Notes: generated from the sequence alone by a model not told the origin. A DNA stretch of 60,737 bases, filler included, from Platydemus manokwari (GCA_037951405.1; 5 parts of 5 records of this genome joined end to end with filler, not necessarily neighbours in it); one strand, 5' to 3'. Positions 28,099 to 38,628 are shown, counted from the first letter of the whole stretch. A program made the numbers and translations.

Positions 28099-28153
<55 letters not shown>
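28099..28153 (+). repeat. (AAT)n microsatellite abutting gap
   Basis: Read directly from the sequence. Confidence 0.95.
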
Positions 28154-28170
<17 letters not shown>

Positions 28171-28619
28171 TAAAAATTTTAATGTTTATTTAATGCTTAT
28201 TAATATGTTTGAGCTAGAATCTCAATATATTATTTCTTCCCATCTGATAACCAACTATTAGGTGAATATATAGACCAATGATTGATTGGAGAATTGTTCT
28301 TTTATATGGAAATAGTGTGATGATCGAATCATTTCCCCTCATTTTGCTATTTATAATAAATTTTATTTATAACCATTTAAAATGCCATGCTATGACAGTT
28401 TATATTTAATTGTTCAGAATAATTATTTATTAATAATAATGATGTATTAACTGAAAAAATGTGACCTCTGATGTTCCAAGAACTCATAAAATAGAGATGG
28501 CATGGATTTTCTTTCTAAAATACTTTAAATATTTCAATCGTTCGGTAAGAGCATCAAATTTGTTTTGGTTATTTAATAAACTTCTCTAATTAATATGTTG
28601 TTGTTGTTATGGTTATTAG

Positions 28620-28829
28620 AAATGTTTAGTGTTGCTATTCGCAACAATATCTCTTCAATCACGTAATGGAGGACCGAATAAATTTTGGAACGAACGGGAA
28701 CAATGTTTCCATAAATGTCCCTCATATCAAACATTTTGTGCCGTTTGTCGGAAACCGGGTGTACATTGCATCATGGACTGTGATGCATATAAATCGAACG
28801 AATGTTTGACTGATTGCATGAATTCATAA
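28620..28829 (+). CDS. Small secreted 8-cysteine peptide A (main exon; first exon uncertain)
   Basis: After acceptor TTAG at 28616-28619: KCLVLLFATISLQSR...CFHKC-x6-CAVC-x6-CIMDC-x7-CLTDC-MNS*. Phase-0 first-exon candidates are 28306-28314 (MEI) or 28497-28544 (MAWIFF...). AATAAA lies just downstream of the stop. Clear paralog of the 36704 gene. Confidence 0.8.
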   Translation, partial: KCLVLLFATISLQSRNGGPNKFWNEREQCFHKCPSYQTFCAVCRKPGVHCIMDCDAYKSNECLTDCMNS

Positions 28830-31286
28830 TGTCGAATTAAAAAAAAATAAATAAACTGTGTTTTACTTAAAATGATATATAAAGATGTCTATCCAATGCC
28901 CTTCAATTAAATTTGTCCAGATTTATTCGATGATTTGATTCGATATTTTTAAGTTATTTTTTAATAATTATAATAATTATAATGTTGGAAAATGTATTGG
29001 GAATAATCTATTTTAAATAATAATTTGAATAAAAAATTGGCTACCGAACAAATCTTGCAAAACATCATCACGTTCTGGTGGGTTATGAATCTTAACGTTT
29101 TCGATTTTATTTTGATATTCTATAAAACAGCTAATTAAAATCTGATTCCAACAGATGTAGTCATTTTTTATAAATTATCAAGCCTCTTGTAAAAATAAGT
29201 CAAACAAATCGATTAATCGATATTAATATATACTTAGAATGACAAATTTGTTGGGGTTTTGTCTTTATTATTTTATTTCTAATGTGAGTTCTGTTGTACC
29301 GATTGATGCCCGATGTCCATCCGGTAAGTATAAAATTATATTATTTTGATTTACTGTAACCAAAAATTCGTTTAACGCTAATCAATACATTGTTTTATTT
29401 CCTGTTATAATAATCCAATAAAACGCCATCGCAAATAAAATCTCATTAATGATTATTATCGATTATTTAGGATAATGATATCTATGAAAAACTTAAAGTA
29501 CTTTCTTTTAAGATTCACAATTGACAAGATTATCGTCATTGTTTTGTAAATAATTCAGTGATAATCATTTATCGTATTTGAAAGAGATTTTTCTCTAAAA
29601 GGTCTTGAAATAATTTTTGTTCTATTTTTTGCAATGAGATTTCTTCGATAGAGCTTATTTTAATAAATTATATCATCTTAATCTCCTACAGTCACTGATA
29701 CTTTGCAATTACGTCTTATAAAAATAGATAACCTCTGTCTTTTTTTATTCTTGATTATTTTTGTCTCATTGGTGTATTTTCCATATTTTTCATTTTATGC
29801 TCCTCTTAGTCTTTGAATTGGATAAACTCTTAGCAGTATTCACACTTTATAAATTTATCTGTCTCGTAAATTTTATCATTGATCATTCTTTTGATAACAT
29901 GTTCTTTATGCCTATTTGTTTTAATTCGTCACACCGTCCCGCATCCTCAATTTCAGCCTTGGTTTCAATCCATAGTCAGTGCTGTAACTTTTCTTTTCCC
30001 ATTGTGCTTGAACCTTCAACTAGTTGTCTTTTCCGTTGTTCCAGTTATCTTGCCTTAATGATTAATTCCATGTACTATTCTATCATCGAAATATATTCTT
30101 TTTAGAGGGGCTTCATTGCCTCTCATTTACTGTAAGTTTTAGGTTTCTTTTATCAATATCATCTGCTGTATTTCAATATCTCATTCTCATATCGTTACAC
30201 TCGATTATTAATAAACTCATACTCTGCTATTTTCTATGCTAGAGATATAAAAGTATGTTTTTTGATAAACATTTTCATCGGATTTGGAATAAATACTGTT
30301 TAGATTTAATAATTCATTCGTTATTTTAAAACACTTCCAATTAGTGATCATTATGAAGTGATAGTAAAACTGAATTTCAATTCAGAAAACACTTCTTTCA
30401 CTATAAAAGCGTGTATGTTGATTGTCCAGAGAATATTAAGAGAGAGATGCATGAATATTAAAAGAATAATGAGAAGCCAAATTGGGAGACAACATGATGA
30501 TTTCAGATAAAATAAATCTCGTAATTATAAATAATAAATCATTGCATTGTCTTATGAATGCACATGATCAATATTATTGAAAGATTCGTTTAAGTGTATT
30601 GTTGATCGATATATTTTTCACATTTTAATATTCAAAATAATGAGCATAATTGGTTTAAATTTTCATATATTTTCTAATATAGTGATTATCTAATTTGTAG
30701 TTGGCATGTGAAAAATGCTAATTTATAAATGGTACTCTCACTACGCAAAAACAATTCAATATTAGAAAAATTAAAAAAAAATTTGCTATTAATTTTATTT
30801 TTTCAAATACCAGAAACTTAATTTGTCATTTAAAATTCTCTGAAAGATAAATGAAATGAAGATAATTTTAATTCTCTTAACATGGTATGATATTGTTGTC
30901 AAATGGCTTAAATTTGCTTTAATCGATATTACGTTATCTATGTTTCATATTGAAAACGCACAATTTTTATTCAATCTTGTATTTTATTTGTTTCTGTTTT
31001 TTTCCTTCGCCGTGTCTTACAAGAAGAATTCAATTTTACAGATAATCGTTCTTTAGTTTCCTTTTTTTGAAATAATTAATCCTTTATTTATTTTACCTTA
31101 AATTTTTTTGCCAGTTTACTTTTCAGACCCATAAGTAATAATAATCAATAATTGACATCCAATTTGATAGTAAACATAATTATTATAAAACATATATCTC
31201 AGATGTTTGGCTTTAAATGTTTTAACAACGTAGGTGATGTATTAAATAACACGTCGTTAGAGAGAGTTTATAAATGAAGCTCGAAA

Positions 31287-31613
31287 TTACACGCTCAAAC
31301 ATTTACTAAGGCAAGGGTCATGGCTGTAGGTTTGACAGTGCATTAAACAATCCGGACTCTGACAATCTTCAAAGCAATGCGTTCGAAAGACTGTGCATTT
31401 TCTGGCGCACTTTTTAATATCTTCCCGTGTAGTTTTAATTCTTGATGAAGAAATTATGATCACGAATATTAACAGAGTCACGAGACAAATCTAAAATATT
31501 TTCTGACATAAACCGAACCCATATTGATATCACGGTATATTATTAAATCAAAAAATAAAAAATTCAACAAAAATATTTAATCAAAATCAAAGACAAAAAA
31601 CCTTTGTAGCCAT
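31287..31613 (-). CDS. Small secreted 8-cysteine peptide B (71 aa, 2 exons)
   Basis: Exon 1 31613-31602 (MATK, AAG|GT) plus exon 2 31490-31287 gives MATKICLVTLLIFVIIISSSRIKTTREDIKK-CARKC-x6-CFEDC-x4-CLMHC-x7-CLSKC-LSV*. The N-terminus is signal-peptide-like. Confidence 0.8.
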
Positions 31614-32793
31614 TATTAAATGATGAATAAGTAAATATGAAAAAAAACAATTACAATTTTCACCATTGTATGGATCCCTTGCATCTTTGTAGCGTTTTGA
31701 AAATTTAGCCACCGATATACAGTATAGATATATAAAACCTTTCACTTGCTGGTAATTAAATACTCTTTTAACACCGCATAAATAAAGAACTTAACTTAAT
31801 ATTACACTTTAAAATTGCAAATTTTTTGATTGGAATAATAATAAATGAAGTAGAATAAATGAATATTTACAACGAATCCCCAATTTTAAGCCAGGTAGCT
31901 ACCAATAACGATCTGTATTTTGGTTGCTTTTCAAAATTGGAAGTGCTCTTTTCAAATATTTTATGAAATAAATAATGTTTAAAATTCTACTGGTTTTCGG
32001 TTGTTTTTAGTTTTTGTTATGCAATTCAACAGCCTGAGCTCTACTATGTATGTGATTACGTTAATGACGTTTTCTGAATAAGAAGAACACAAAAATTACC
32101 AGTTAATTATATTTTACATTGATCAATATGTGTACATTCGATTTGAAGCTGACCCGTATTATTTTACAACAAATAAGTATTAGCTGAAAAAACATCTTAG
32201 CTCTTAATTTTCTGAATAAATTAGTAAATTGATTTTCAACGATGACTAGTTGGGCTTCAAAAGGGTGTGATTCTTTAGGCGTATGAAAATTATTAATTTA
32301 AAGATAAATTTACCAAGTTATTAAAATTTTTGTGATATATTAATGTTTTCTTCAAAAGACGAGTTCAAAATATTGTGTGACAATTCATCCAAAGATTATA
32401 TTATAGCTTGTCTCTTTGTTAGGTTTCCTAGTGAAGCCCACTGATGTCATGTAATTTGTACACGGGATTTTTCATCACTCAAAAAAATGTATCGTTTTTT
32501 ATATCTTTTACTTTAATAATTTACATTTTCAAAATTTCCTCTCAATTTTAAATTTTTAAATTTTTCTGACATTGCCAATTTTTTAACCTAAATTTACAGA
32601 TGTTTCATTTTATATTCCTTTTATATTCTATTTCTTTGAATTATTAACTTTATATTAATTATAATAATATGCCATTATTTTTAGAATTCTTTGCAAACTA
32701 TACTAATATTGAAGGGATCATAAATGATAATAAATGTCTAATGTCTTGGCGTAATTGTAATTCCAAAAAAATGACGAAAATTCAATTGGATTC

Positions 32794-35700
32794 AGTTACG
32801 GCATTAACACTTTCAGTCATAATATTTATTTAAAAAACTACACTAATACGCCAATCAATTATTTAAACAAAAACAATATGTTTCTTTATTTAATCGCGTT
32901 TCACGCCTTTTCTTAATGCCCTCTGCACCGTTTCAGTCACTCTAATCATCTGGATTTTATTGCATGAGGGCATTGAATCTCCACATGTCTGTCTGACTTG
33001 AATCTGGTAATTCGATAGAGGCCTTCGTACTGGTATCCATTCTTCTTCTTCTTATGGGAATATACGCAAACTAGCACATTCTTTCTAACCTAAAATAATC
33101 GATGTGTTCTTTCCCCCCTGTCTCGATTAGACATTATGTTGGCTGCCACTTTAGAGTTTTCTCTAGCTACTGCTGCAATATCATCTCAAGTTTGATTCTT
33201 GTGACTCACATCTGTATGAACATTGATCTTCTGCCCGTAGATTATCTCGAAAGGCTAGAACGTCGTTGCTGATTGATGCGTTGCGTTGATACAGAATTCT
33301 ATTCTTGGCAACAATACAGCCCAATATTTCTCATGGCGGTTACCTTTTAAAGTAGCTGTTATCATATCTCGTACCGTCGTGATGACACTTTCTCTAGTTC
33401 GTTCGATTGATGCTGGTATGTTGAGCTGAATTCTGGTTTAATACTTAAATTCAATCAAGCTTATCTCATAAATTTGCCTCAAAATTGTTTCTCCTTATAA
33501 GCTTTCTAAAACGATAAATTCAAGATTTCAAAATGACCTGGAAGATTGTCTTTTCGTCTTGCTTAGATGTAGCAGTGAATATGTCGATAATGTCTACTAG
33601 ATACTTATTGTTACTATGCATCGCGTCCATTTGTGCAATGTCCACCACGATTTGCTCTTGAAACTCAGATCCTAAAGGATGGAGCAGAAACTTCTTAGTT
33701 CTGGATTGATCAATCTTTCTCTTTGCACATATAATACATTCTTTTAGTATCTCTTTGATGGTGTTAAACATCTGGGCCAATAAAACCTGTCGTCCAAATA
33801 TACGAAGGTTTTCTTTGAGCCTAAGTGGTAAAGCTTTTCGTGAATTGTCTTGCAAATTGAACGGCAAAACCTTTCGGTATTATAGCAGTCAAACTTTTCA
33901 CTTTTTTTCAGCATCAGCGTATTGTCGACCACCTTCAGTTTATCTTTAATTCTCGAAAGTGAATGTTTATTCCAGAATTCCGCGCTAGTTAGAGTTATTT
34001 CATTATTTAGAAATCTGAATATCTTCACTATTTCTGCATCGTTGTGCTGTGATTCCTGTATTTTCTGCATTATCTTCGACTTTTTTTGTATTTGAGCCAA
34101 ATATTTGCTTTTCGGCTTTTCCGTCTTTGCTTCATCGTGTCTCGTCTTGCAATAGAAACATAGTGTCTCATTGATCCTAGACAATCTATCTGCGTTGCTA
34201 TGATTCTCTTCATTTCTGTATCTTAAATCGAAATCGTATCCTGACAGCGTAGCCATCCATGTTTGAAATTGAGGGCTGATCGCTTTTCATGTCGAGTTTA
34301 AGAATACCAGGGCTTTGTGATCGATCCTTGCTATGAATTTCTTCCCGTACAAGTATTGTCTAAAGTAAATAACATACTCAAGGATAGCCAGCGGTTCTTT
34401 CTTGGTAACACAGTATCATTTCTCGTGACTAGTCAGCAATCGAGAACCATAGGCTATAACTACTATTGTTCCTTCTTCAGTAGCTTGGGTTAGAACAGTC
34501 CTAATTGCACCAAAACTTGCGTCCGTATCGAGAAAAAATAACCTATTTTCTCTTGGGTAATCCAAAAATGGTGCTTCACACAGTGCCGACTTAAGCATCA
34601 AAAAACTTTACTGACACGATTCTGACCATTTAATCCCTTAGCTCCACCTGCAGTTGCGGCGTATAGTGGAGCCGCTATTAAAGCATAATCTTTAATGAAT
34701 TGCCTGTAATAGTTTGTCAACCCTAAAAATAATCGCATTTTGCTGGTACACTGTGATATTCGGGCATCTCGTATCTGTTCAATTTGTCCTTATTGGTTTG
34801 TATGCCCTTGGCACTGACCGTGTGGCCTATAAACCGTACTTTATCTTTGATAAGTGTACATTTCTCCGGATTCAGACACGACTTTTGAATTCGTCGAAAC
34901 ACAGATTCCAGTAGATCGTCATGATCTTGCTGAGTTCTTCCTTATATTAACACATCATCTAAATATACCACAACGCCTTTAAAGATCAATCCATCCAACA
35001 GCTCGTGCATTCGTTTTTAAAAGGTTGCTAGTGCTGTAGATAGTCCAAACGGGAGTCTGTTGAAAGAGTATTAGCAGGTTCTTGTGCTAAAAGCTGTGTA
35101 ATCTTGGAATCTAGGACTTAGTTCGACTTGGTAATAAGCCTGTCCCAAATCTATCGAGGAGAAACATTTAGCATCTGCAAACAGTCTAGACGTAGGTGGA
35201 TATCAAGGATGGGGAAACTAAATTTTTTTGTCACTCCATTGAGTCTTCAATAATCCACACACATCCGGATCGATCCGTCCTTTTTTCATACGATGACCAG
35301 TGGTGAATTCCAAGCACTCTTGCATGGTCTCATGACTCCTATTTCGATAAAGTTTTTCATCACATCTTCTATTTTTGCTTCTAAGTGCACGGGTTGTCTT
35401 CTGCGAAATAAGATTTCCGCTAATTATAATATCATGAACAACTAAGGTGGTTTTGCCTAGATCCAATTTTGAACCCATGAATATATTTCCGTATTCTTTG
35501 ATGAGTCTTTCAATTCTCCCCGTGTTCCTAGTTTTGATCATTTCCTTTGCGTGTTTCGAACTTTCTCATCTGTATATTCGCCGTTAAATTGTAATGATTC
35601 GATTGTGACCACCTCTTTCAGCTGAATCCCGAATGCATTCATTGTGTCAATACATTTAATGAAATAATTTTTTTATTATCACAACCGTAATTTTTTTTCT

Positions 35701-36322
35701 TTCCTTTTCACTCGACCATCACATCTGAATAACCTTGAGGGCGTTCGGCACCCGTTGAAAAAAATCCACTAAGCGTAATCAAACTATTTTGCAATTTTGA
35801 TCTTCCCACTTTCTTCCCACAACATTCTATACTTCAGCTCCGTTAATAAGCACTTTACTTCACACCATTCACGTATGGTTCGATTTTCATGTTATCTACT
35901 GATTTAACGTGGTACACTTTGTTCTCGATCCTCCAACATCTTTGCAGCACTCCTAATTTCACTAATATCAATATCTGGTTTAAGAGCAAGGCAGTCTTTT
36001 AACCAATTTTATCGTGTTCTTTTGCTGATGATATCCTTCACTAATTGATAGCCACTCCTCTGTATTTTGCATCCATTTTGGGGCTTTATTTGAATTTCTT
36101 TCATCGGATTTTGGAATATTGAAATTGGTTCGCTTTTTGTGCCTATTTCAGCAAACTCTCTAATATCTGTATCTTCCGCTGATTCCTTGTGATTGCATTG
36201 ATTTGTATGGCGTCGTCGCCAGTCATGTCATTAATACTCTCGCGCATAATATTTTTTTAAAAAACTACACAAATCCGCCAATCATTTCTTTAAACAAATA
36301 CATTGTGTTTGTTTATTTAATC
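32794..36322 (-). mobile_element. Degenerate Ty3/Gypsy LTR retrotransposon (copy 1)
   Basis: Fragmented pol: RT (YLDD near 34955), RNase H (LDTDASFGAI, IAYGSR, NHSNADRLSR) and integrase fragments, with many stops and frameshifts. ~100-bp direct repeats at 32794-32895 and 36221-36322. PBS-like TGGCGACGACGCC reads on the minus strand from 36221. Confidence 0.9.
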
Positions 36323-36703
36323 AGTGGTTGAAATGTATAAAAGAAAGAGTTATAAAGTTATAAAGACAGTTTAGAGAAGACACATAAAATGTTGAAGGTA
36401 GATATTTTTATGTATAGATAATTTGGAAAAGTTGTACATCAAAGATTTGATAGAAGAGGTTACGAGAATTATCAAATGAATTTAAACCAAAAGGATTTAT
36501 AATAAGAATTTTTGTTATCAATATAGATTATCGATTTCGAATTATTTAAATGATCTCAATAAATACTCTTTTTAAGTTTTGACTTTTTTAATCATTTTCA
36601 AGGCGTGATTTATAAATTAATAGCGCAATATAGAATACAAAAACATTTTACAATCGATATTGAATACAAAACCGTTTTCAAATAAGTTTATTTTTATTCC
36701 ACA

Positions 36704-37259
36704 TTACATGGCCATACAAAGACTCAAACAAGAATCTCTTTGATAGCCTGGACAGTCAATAACGCAATCATCTTTTCTAGGCTGACAAGGGTTACAATGT
36801 CTTCTGTAATTCGGACATTCCATAAAACATTTCTTTCGATCCTCCCAATTGAGTTCAGGTTTCTTTTTTGAAGATGATTGCAATGTTATCGATGCGAATA
36901 GCAATACCAAGCATTTCTACCAGTCAACAATTATGCATGACATCAATTCGAATAATCAATCAAATAATCGAAATAGATATAATACCAAAATGAAGCGTAA
37001 TGTTTCGCTTTCTGTGATTGGTTAACAGTTTCAGAAATATTTATTATTGATAAGATGTTTCATTCTTTATGTTCACACTTAATCAGACATTCAAATTAAG
37101 TTTGACCTCACAAACTCTATTTAAATATTGATTATTATCGGTTATACAATCATTATTGATCATAATATATTCGTTAATCTTAGATCATCAATAAATAATT
37201 CAGTGAAATTAAAGTGCAATTTTAATGATTAATAAAACAAATCAAACCTTTTTGAACAT
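36704..37259 (-). CDS. Small secreted 8-cysteine peptide C (74 aa, 2 exons)
   Basis: Exon 1 37259-37248 (MFKK, AAG|GT) plus exon 2 36916-36704 gives MFKKKCLVLLFASITLQSS...CFMEC-x6-CNPC-x6-CVIDC-x7-CLSLC-MAM*. Cys spacing is identical to peptide A. AATAAA follows the stop. Confidence 0.8.
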
Positions 37260-37989
37260 TGTAAAATTGAATTGAAAATATTGGGAATAAAATTAATCTA
37301 ATACAAAATCAAGAATACAAACAAATTGATTTTTTCCCAACCGATTTACGGCGCCTGTCATAATTTATTTAAAATCAATCAATATTTGGTTTTAGAATTG
37401 TTTTGAAGTTGTTTATTTCATTTGGTTGATAAACCCTAAATTCCAAACCTATTTTTATCTTCCTGCCTGAGCTCCAGAACCAAAATGAGTAAATAACAGG
37501 CATTGTTTTTGTCACTGCTTTTAAAATAATTACCACAAAAGATTTTACCATGATATTATGTATTTTTTATAGAAACATAATGCAATCCCCTCACTGGAGG
37601 TCATTACAAATTGATTGTTGCGATAACTAATAACAAACTTCAATATAGTTAATAGTATCGAATCAATACCGCGTTGCTCAATGAGTGTATTGGCAAGTAG
37701 CCACACTGTAATAATTGAAATCTTATCATGGAATTTGATGTGTTGTTGTCAAATAAATCAGAAATGTTTTGCTAAACGTCACGGTGAGTGAATTATTGAA
37801 ATATATATTATTTCAGGAAACATTCTAAATGAAAAATCAATAACTAAAATAAAAGTCAAATTGACAGAGGTGAGACAATCAGTGAAATGTATTAGATAGA
37901 ATATTGCAAGATTTCCAGACATTCAAGTCATTGGTTTTGAGAAATCAATAATTAACAACAATAATTATACAAAGTAACCAGGCGAGTTT

Positions 37990-38260
37990 TTGAGTATTGT
38001 TTTACTTAAAATTGTTTGCTCTTGATCAGAATTTAGTGAAGAACTTTCCTAAGAAAACACTATCGTTTTCTTTAAAGAAAAGGTCACGAATCATATCTAT
38101 CAGTTGGTGTTCATGAAAAGACTTAGAGTTAAGGTGTATGTGACAGTCGAGAATGTATGGAATTCATTGAAATAATTGCTACCTGTTATTGACAATTCTG
38201 ATCAAAAATAGTAGTCTATCACATGAGAGATAATTATATGGTAGCTGGTAGATTTATTTA
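37990..38260 (+). mobile_element. Possible piggyBac transposase relic
   Basis: ELS*ENTIVFFKEK and RVKVYV resemble the LS.DE.M..FKGR and GIKVYV motifs. Strongly decayed. Confidence 0.25.
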
Positions 38261-38628
38261 TATTAGATTTTACATGAATTTTAGGCTTAAGTTAAGAAAA
38301 AGAGTTCTTTGACCTACTTTTGTTATAATGAATTTTCACGCATGAGATTATTTTATAACTTATTTTTATATATAACTGCCATCTTTGATTTGTTTGATAT
38401 TGTGCAGTTCATATGTCATTTTTTAAAATGTCTAATAGGGACAAAACATAGTTTTAAAATCAAGTTCCCATTCTAATCACAACACTTCTATATGATTATT
38501 TGAGTTTTTAAATTTAAATTTTTATAATNNNNNNNNNNNNNNNNNNNNNNNNNNNNNNNNNNNNNNNNNNNNTTAATTAATTAANNNNNNNNNNNNNNNN
38601 NNNNNNNNNNNNNNNNNNNNNNNNNNNN

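Follow-up and report, generated by a model that had tools for sequence, protein, structure and literature searches.

Here we describe three homologous open exons, designated g1 (plus strand), g2 and g3 (both minus strand), that lie within 9 kb of DNA from Platydemus manokwari (GCA_037951405.1), and on balance we favour reading them as three ancient paralogues of a small two-exon gene encoding secreted, cystine-stapled helical peptides. The window is the whole stretch of 60,737 nucleotides (nt), in which five parts of the genome are joined by filler, and all positions are counted from its first nucleotide; the piece analysed here is 28099-38528. The three copies share an intron position, have retained open frames and eight aligned cysteines, and have no detectable relatives in the public collections that we searched. 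That they are real, selected protein-coding genes appears very probable, and, as we read the DNA, the evidence for genes is the homology together with the conserved cysteines, not the length of the frames alone. A secreted and disulfide-bonded product seems likely, and for a helical hairpin-type fold, as predicted by modelling, we put the chances at about even.

The last coding exons, each including its TAA stop, occupy 28620-28829 on the plus strand in g1 (69 codons), 31287-31490 on the minus strand in g2 (67 codons) and 36704-36916 on the minus strand in g3 (70 codons). In each translation, (K/I)CLV leads into a hydrophobic run of 11-13 residues, and the eight cysteines come after a short polar stretch. 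Translation places the leaders KCLVLLFATISLQS, ICLVTLLIFVIIISSS and KCLVLLFASITLQSSS at 28620-28661 (plus), 31443-31490 (minus) and 36869-36916 (minus), respectively, and translation and pattern scan place the eight-cysteine domains at 28704-28817 (plus), 31299-31409 (minus) and 36716-36829 (minus). The framework of g1 and g3 is C-x3-C-x6-C-x2-C-x6-C-x3-C-x7-C-x3-C, from which g2 departs at loop 3 (x3) and loop 4 (x4), and all copies keep an aromatic residue three positions after Cys2 (Y/Y/F), a tyrosine three positions after Cys6 and a leucine after Cys7. An earlier note on this DNA had described the hydrophobic (K/I)CLV start behind a phase-0 acceptor, the cysteine framework with its loop lengths and the three kept positions; translation reproduced the first, translation, alignment and pattern scan agreed on the second, and the third are present in all three genes. 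All eight cysteines (8/8) align across the copies, with pairwise tblastn E-values of 4e-19 for g1/g3, about 1e-12 for g2/g3 and 0.002 for g1/g2. A six-frame regular-expression scan and a lenient tblastn search of 28099-38528 returned exactly these three copies, and neither found a fourth. The stretch at 37741-37786 (plus), which reads ..KCFAKRH.., was considered as a decayed fourth copy and rejected, as no further remnant of the framework was found there.

In all three copies, an in-frame TAG whose AG is also the splice acceptor stands immediately before the first codon of the open frame (28617-28619, plus, in g1); the position and phase (0) of the intron are therefore common to the three, and because of the in-frame stop directly upstream, each frame needs an upstream ATG exon. 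Candidate first exons on the correct strand lie upstream of both minus-strand genes, at a distance of 111 nt in g2 and 331 nt in g3. In g2, the predicted first exon is the 12-nt ATGGCTACAAAG (M-A-T-K) at 31602-31613 (minus), followed by GT, and the predicted phase-0 intron of 111 nt (GTTTTT...TTTTAG, 21% GC) spans 31491-31601 (minus); in g3, the predicted first exon is the 12-nt ATGTTCAAAAAG (M-F-K-K) at 37248-37259 (minus), again followed by GT, and the predicted phase-0 intron of 331 nt (GTTTGA...CTGGTAG, 25% GC) spans 36917-37247 (minus). Because bare ATG-to-GT candidates are plentiful, with 8 upstream of g1, 7 of g2 and 10 of g3, the rarity of the pattern ATGNNNNNNAAGGT matters: it occurs twice in the whole window, in the first exons of g2 and g3 only, where 0.31 occurrences would be expected. 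These two genes are thus the ones that carry the 12-nt first exon ending in AAG/GT that had been proposed at the outset, and the further proposal of small stand-alone two-exon genes for secreted peptides also looks supported.

No equivalent 12-nt first exon was found upstream of g1. The candidate with the best donor at this gene is 28497-28544 (plus; 16 codons, M-A-W-I..., TCG/GTAAGA), which would leave a candidate intron of 75 nt at 28545-28619 (plus). The start proposed earlier, at 28306 (28306-28314, M-E-I), survives as one of eight candidates; its donor is poor, and that of 28497-28544 is better. Also upstream of g1, at 28471-28508 (plus), ATGTTCCAAG and ATGGCATGG resemble g3 ATGTTCAAAAAG and g2 ATGGCTACAAAG and are without a GT donor; an ancestral first exon may have left them behind, in keeping with a changed or lost g1 start. 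At the other end of the genes, possible polyadenylation signals consist of two overlapping AATAAA hexamers 17-26 nt past the g1 stop (28846-28855, plus) and two AATAAA hexamers 6-17 nt past the g3 stop (36687-36698, minus), and the 3' side of g2 has TATAAA only and no AATAAA; in AT-rich DNA, such hexamers are weak evidence. No shared motif was found upstream of g1, g2 and g3.

Outside the coding exons, in introns and flanks, the three loci no longer align. Within the exons, synonymous differences are saturated (proportion of synonymous differences, pS, 0.65-0.85), and the proportion of nonsynonymous differences (pN, 0.39-0.49) lies below pS in every pair; for g1/g3, the only pair in which the synonymous distance dS can still be corrected, the ratio of nonsynonymous to synonymous distance (dN/dS) is about 0.38. 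Because synonymous sites are saturated and yet three frames are open and eight cysteines kept, we conclude that selection has maintained the copies. The divergence of the loops would fit old paralogues under weak purifying selection, and these comparisons give no specific sign of diversifying selection; the suggestion that fixed cysteines with hypervariable loops mark a toxin, antimicrobial or pheromone family has therefore gained no specific support.

Under the reading that we favour, a very short first exon, reading M-x-x-K in g2 and g3, would be spliced in phase 0 to a second exon supplying the rest of a signal peptide, namely a hydrophobic core of 11-13 residues and a serine-rich c-region. 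Read by eye, M-x-x-K followed by the 11-13-residue core and then S-S-S in g2 and g3 has the anatomy of a signal peptide; the leaders end in small residues (LQS, SSS), and their grand average of hydropathy is +1.2 to +2.8, against -0.55 to -1.07 for the remainder. After import into the endoplasmic reticulum (ER) and cleavage, the product would be a hydrophilic, mildly basic peptide of 51-55 residues (about 6 kDa, isoelectric point 7.7-8.5), with an N-terminal arm of 13-15 residues up to Cys1 and 15 residues spanned by Cys1 to Cys4, in which eight cysteines would form four disulfides stapling short helices. Aligned with each other, the halves of the domain give C-x3-C-x2-[Y/F]-x3/4-C-x2/3-C, the aromatic residue stands three positions after the second cysteine in 6/6 half-units, C-P-x-Y occurs in both halves of g3, and a profile comparison of half 1 with half 2 in hhalign gave P = 8e-5 and a probability of 61% over 11 columns. 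These likenesses are suggestive, though not proof, of a tandem duplication of a four-cysteine unit, and two such units would then be joined by a short turn containing proline or glycine.

The spacing of the cysteines is near mirror-symmetric (3, 6, 2/3, then a turn of 4-6 residues with Pro/Gly, then 3, 7, 3), and two topologies would fit it: either two tandem CX3C mini-hairpins (I-IV, II-III; V-VIII, VI-VII) or a single helical hairpin, kinked and crossed by four nested disulfide rungs (I-VIII, II-VII, III-VI, IV-V). AlphaFold2 was run on the alignment of the three sequences, and its models were read for confidence scores and helix positions. For the mature part, the predicted local distance difference test (pLDDT) was 83.4 and the predicted template modelling score (pTM) 0.61, and four short helices (residues 2-14, 18-25, 37-41 and 43-50) were placed around Cys1-2, around Cys3-4, after Cys6 and at Cys7-8; for the full second exon, the pLDDT was 73. 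The prediction is consistent with the four-helix peptides that the earlier note had envisaged.

The general kind of molecule is known. Cystine-stapled helix-helix peptides include plant alpha-hairpinins, scorpion kappa-KTx and conotoxin vil14a (PMC11591084, PMC11722136), and CX3C pairs on antiparallel helices give ladder disulfides in alpha-hairpinins, kappa-KTx and B-IV (PMC11591084, PMC11722136, bioRxiv 10.1101/2020.05.26.118075). Animal versions with four disulfides are nemertean B-IV (PDB 1VIB) and sea-anemone acrorhagin I (PDB 2L2R) (PMC11722136). The earlier note had recognised no named animal family in the framework; this stands in so far as Pfam, PDB and the large searches gave no match, but eight-cysteine, four-disulfide helical hairpins of about 55 residues have precedents in animals (PMC6410017, PMC11722136). 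We consider that the present peptides would probably work like a cystine-stapled helical hairpin while being filed under no named family. A stronger form of this view, that they constitute an undescribed animal family whose own fold arose by tandem duplication of a CX3C-aromatic-CX2/3C unit and not from B-toxins, acrorhagins or hairpinins, is possible, and we hold it only tentatively.

We judge it improbable that the peptides are distant members, or an independent re-invention, of the nemertean B-toxin/beta-nemertide family and therefore mucus or venom neurotoxins acting on ion channels, although this family is among the closest known comparisons. Cerebratulus lacteus B-II and B-IV have 55 residues, about 5.9 kDa and eight cysteines in four disulfides, with the first cysteine at residue 12 and helices at 13-26 and 33-49 forming a helical hairpin (PMC6410017), and the disulfides of B-IV are ladder-like (bioRxiv 10.1101/2020.05.26.118075). 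Like the B-toxins and beta-nemertides, the present peptides would be secreted, of about 55 residues (51-55 vs 55) and about 6 kDa, helical, with eight cysteines and in multiple copies (PMC6410017, PMC5864730, PMC11126048). They also share the length of the N-terminal arm before Cys1, the 15-residue Cys1-to-Cys4 span, and cysteines placed for laddering antiparallel segments, in the near mirror-symmetric spacing that a four-rung ladder requires. Presumably, the B-IV spacing departs from the present framework in loops 4 and 6 only, which we treat as a lead and not as a result. The differences are nevertheless considerable: there was no match to the Pfam family 'Neurotoxin B-IV-like' at E up to 10, none to 1VIB in single-sequence and profile searches of PDB sequences at E up to 10, and none of this type when both models were compared with PDB by Foldseek. 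The Cys4-Cys5 loop measures 10 residues in the B-II/B-IV type and 16 in beta-nemertides (PMC11126048), whereas loop 4 here has 6, 4 and 6 residues in g1, g2 and g3. Finally, prolines follow Cys2 and Cys6, four short helices predicted from three sequences would stand in place of the two long ones of the B-toxins, and the present peptides are only mildly basic and have a visible internal tandem repeat.

Alpha-hairpinins, together with vicilin-buried peptides, form a plant-derived family defined by motif and fold, not by homology. Their 4C motif is C-X3-C-X4-20-C-X3-C, and modular precursors with several motifs exist (PMC11591084). The motif is present at Cys5-Cys8 in all of our copies and at Cys1-Cys4 in g2 only, and a helix-loop-helix stapled by CX3C pairs is predicted here as well. 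Unlike alpha-hairpinins, however, g1 and g3 have C-X2-C at the close of their first unit, and two units are fused in one eight-cysteine domain, with 4-6 residues between them and no processing linker. Under the curation rule of the family, a peptide may have at most two additional cysteines besides those of the core motif (PMC11591084 Table 1); the first-half cysteines of g1 and g3 form no 4C core and count as extra, which places these copies outside the rule. Acrorhagin I and, of the CS-alpha/alpha type, kappa-KTx and vil14a are secreted animal peptides with two helices stapled by disulfides, and acrorhagin I also has four disulfides (PMC11722136); kappa-KTx and vil14a differ in having two disulfides and 23-35 residues, acrorhagin I differs in that one of its disulfides joins a helix to a loop, and none of the three gave a sequence or fold match to the present peptides.

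As a genomic analogue only, aphid BCR peptides come from orphan, clustered, tandemly duplicated genes and measure about 70-100 residues, and similarly to the present copies they conserve the signal peptide and the cysteine spacing while the remaining sequence has diverged (PMC3574423). BCR3 is CX3CX6CX21-25CX6CX3C and BCR6 is CX15CX3CX3CX10CX10CXCC (PMC9604261). Membership of this group was rejected because none of its four motifs (PMC9604261 Table 3) equals the present framework, and it is also unlikely because BCRs sit in annotated genomes, yet the public protein searches gave no relative. The fungal and insect 'hairpin loop peptides' (PMC13357843) were likewise rejected, on cysteine motif, on hydrophobicity and on the lack of matches.

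All searches for relatives used the second exon, as a first exon of four codons is too short to search. No family was matched by Pfam hmmscan at E up to 10; a sub-threshold 'Defensin-like' match for g1 (E 0.04-0.08, and 13-14 bits where the cut-off is 27) was set aside. Against all PDB sequences (g3 alone and the family profiles A1 and A3, E up to 10), there was no significant match; the best profile matches, to the Cys-rich zinc-finger region of ASH2, were non-significant (E 0.12-0.9), as was that to the vicilin-like peptide 7uv1 (E 0.4-2.3). Foldseek found no PDB match to either AlphaFold2 model, a method that is weak on peptides of 50 residues. Neither g3 nor the alignment met a true relative among 5.8 billion clusters in a word-indexed search, and an exhaustive HMMER search of 1.84 billion representatives yielded none either. 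The only HMMER match with E < 0.001 (P0001, 599 residues) was rejected as spurious: its sequence is the translation of a tandem repeat of about 60 residues, in which a short ..DRKQCF.. string meets the family profile nine times. No relative came from degenerate-pattern scans of contigs from metagenomes, prokaryote genomes and viruses, an exact scan of metagenome contigs for the conserved leader DNA gave no match, and neither did strings of 8-9 residues in full-text literature; overall, nothing matched among about 15 billion predicted proteins. Because the neighbouring transposon also has one relative only, the source organism and its kin appear to be poorly represented in databases, and what the missing matches show is a lack of annotation for the family, not its restriction to one species.

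Several points weigh against our reading. The genes are predicted from genomic sequence. At the 5' ends, 7-10 alternative ATG-to-GT candidates lie upstream of each gene, the donors of g2 and g3 (GTTTTT and GTTTGA) are not strong by the general metazoan consensus, and g1 may be 5'-defective. Secretion is read from hydrophobicity and, by eye, from the pattern of small residues at -3/-1; the AlphaFold2 models, built from three sequences only, lend thin support, with the disulfide pairing being a prediction. An antimicrobial role gains no positive support from the peptides, which are only mildly cationic and not obviously amphipathic. The codon positions show only a mild skew in their numbers of differences (e.g. 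33/26/34 for g1/g3), so that constraint outside the cysteines is weak.

A rival proposal is that the three copies are non-functional relics, either unexpressed pseudogenes or repeat-borne fragments, whose frames are open by chance. The lack of a 12-nt first exon or clear start in g1, the absence of any protein match and the decayed retrotransposon between g2 and g3 would all be in keeping with it, and a single frame of this length is not rare, as 8 of the 1063 stop-to-stop segments outside the transposon reach at least 67 codons. Of the triplets outside the transposon, however, 7.7% are stop codons, which gives a 67-codon frame a probability of about 0.005 of being open by chance, and the joint chance of three frames of 67-70 codons staying open, despite saturated synonymous sites, is about 1e-7. 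Moreover, the eight cysteines, the aromatic residues and the acceptor position have been kept in all copies and the first exon in two, and the flanks share no repeat, so that the copies are not recent transposon cargo. We therefore regard this proposal as quite improbable.

Least credible of all is a non-secreted product whose cysteines bind metal or serve an intracellular oxidative-folding relay, of the small Tim or zinc-ribbon-like kind: CX3C and CX2C do resemble metal-binding or small-Tim motifs and the weak best PDB profile matches fall in the ASH2 zinc-finger region, but those matches cover only part of the cysteines, Pfam gave no match to Tim10/DDP (twin CX3C) or to any zinc-finger model, a hydrophobic leader is present, where small Tims have no cleavable one, and its place behind M-x-x-K is typical of an ER signal peptide, the loops keep their aromatic and proline residues, and small Tims have longer spacing between their CX3C pairs than the 6-7 residues seen here.

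The surroundings of the genes are poor in other recognisable features. Within 28099-38528, GC content is 21-31% outside the single transposon and 36-40% within it, and scans for transfer RNAs and with Rfam gave no match. The transposon, at 32793-36322 between g2 and g3 with pol on the minus strand, is the decayed remnant of a Ty3/gypsy-type long terminal repeat retrotransposon; it retains Integrase_H2C2 and RT_RNaseH_2 pieces, most of gag and protease is gone, and its two ends are direct repeats of about 103 nt (32793-32895 and 36220-36322) that are 83% alike. Its GC content of 36-40% compares with about 27% in the surroundings. Its pol carries 7 in-frame stops and at least one frameshift by comparison with the two open reading frames (ORFs) of a related contig, in agreement with the earlier description of decayed neighbours. 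That contig, k119_869587 of European Nucleotide Archive metagenome assembly ERZ27299534 (L001, 1883 nt), shares 89% DNA identity with the retrotransposon over 1872 nt (positions 1-1872 against window 33576-35431) and is the sole relative, among public collections, of anything in the piece; from this identity, we conclude that this organism or a close relative was present in the sample of ERZ27299534.

The left edge of the piece (28099-28170) is a perfect (ATA)24 microsatellite. At 29599-30105 (plus), there is a strong T/C skew (GC skew -0.25, AT skew -0.31), and the longest open frame outside the transposon, of 114 residues (29761-30105), lies inside this stretch and has no family match; it may represent a further decayed repeat, or else an ORF open by chance in skewed sequence. 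At 29239-29325 (plus), an ATG and 29 codons with a signal-peptide-like start (MTNLLGFCLYYFISNVSS...) end at a strong donor, G/GTAAGT, and may be the first exon of another secreted-protein gene; the candidate has no Pfam match, and no downstream exon was recognised.

As regards function, we think an extracellular binding peptide that is stable to proteases the most likely product. Among the roles that we consider, that of a defence or toxin-type effector ranks first, although we would suggest it with some hesitation, and a signalling ligand, ranking second, is rather unlikely. In many lineages, toxins, antimicrobials and signals are found among small disulfide-rich secreted peptides, which annotation routinely misses; the present genes illustrate why, with a first exon of 12 nt and a whole product of about 72 residues. 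Lineage-specific families of Cys-rich peptides are common, and thus the finding is a moderately interesting annotation find and no more. If the peptides do have a fold of their own, the cystine-stapled helical hairpin would have arisen again, through an internal duplication still legible in the sequence. Few cystine-stapled helix-helix peptides are known, and they attract interest as stable scaffolds and as ion-channel ligands; if expressed, the three genes would add to them an eight-cysteine helical scaffold with a plausible origin by duplication of a four-cysteine unit.

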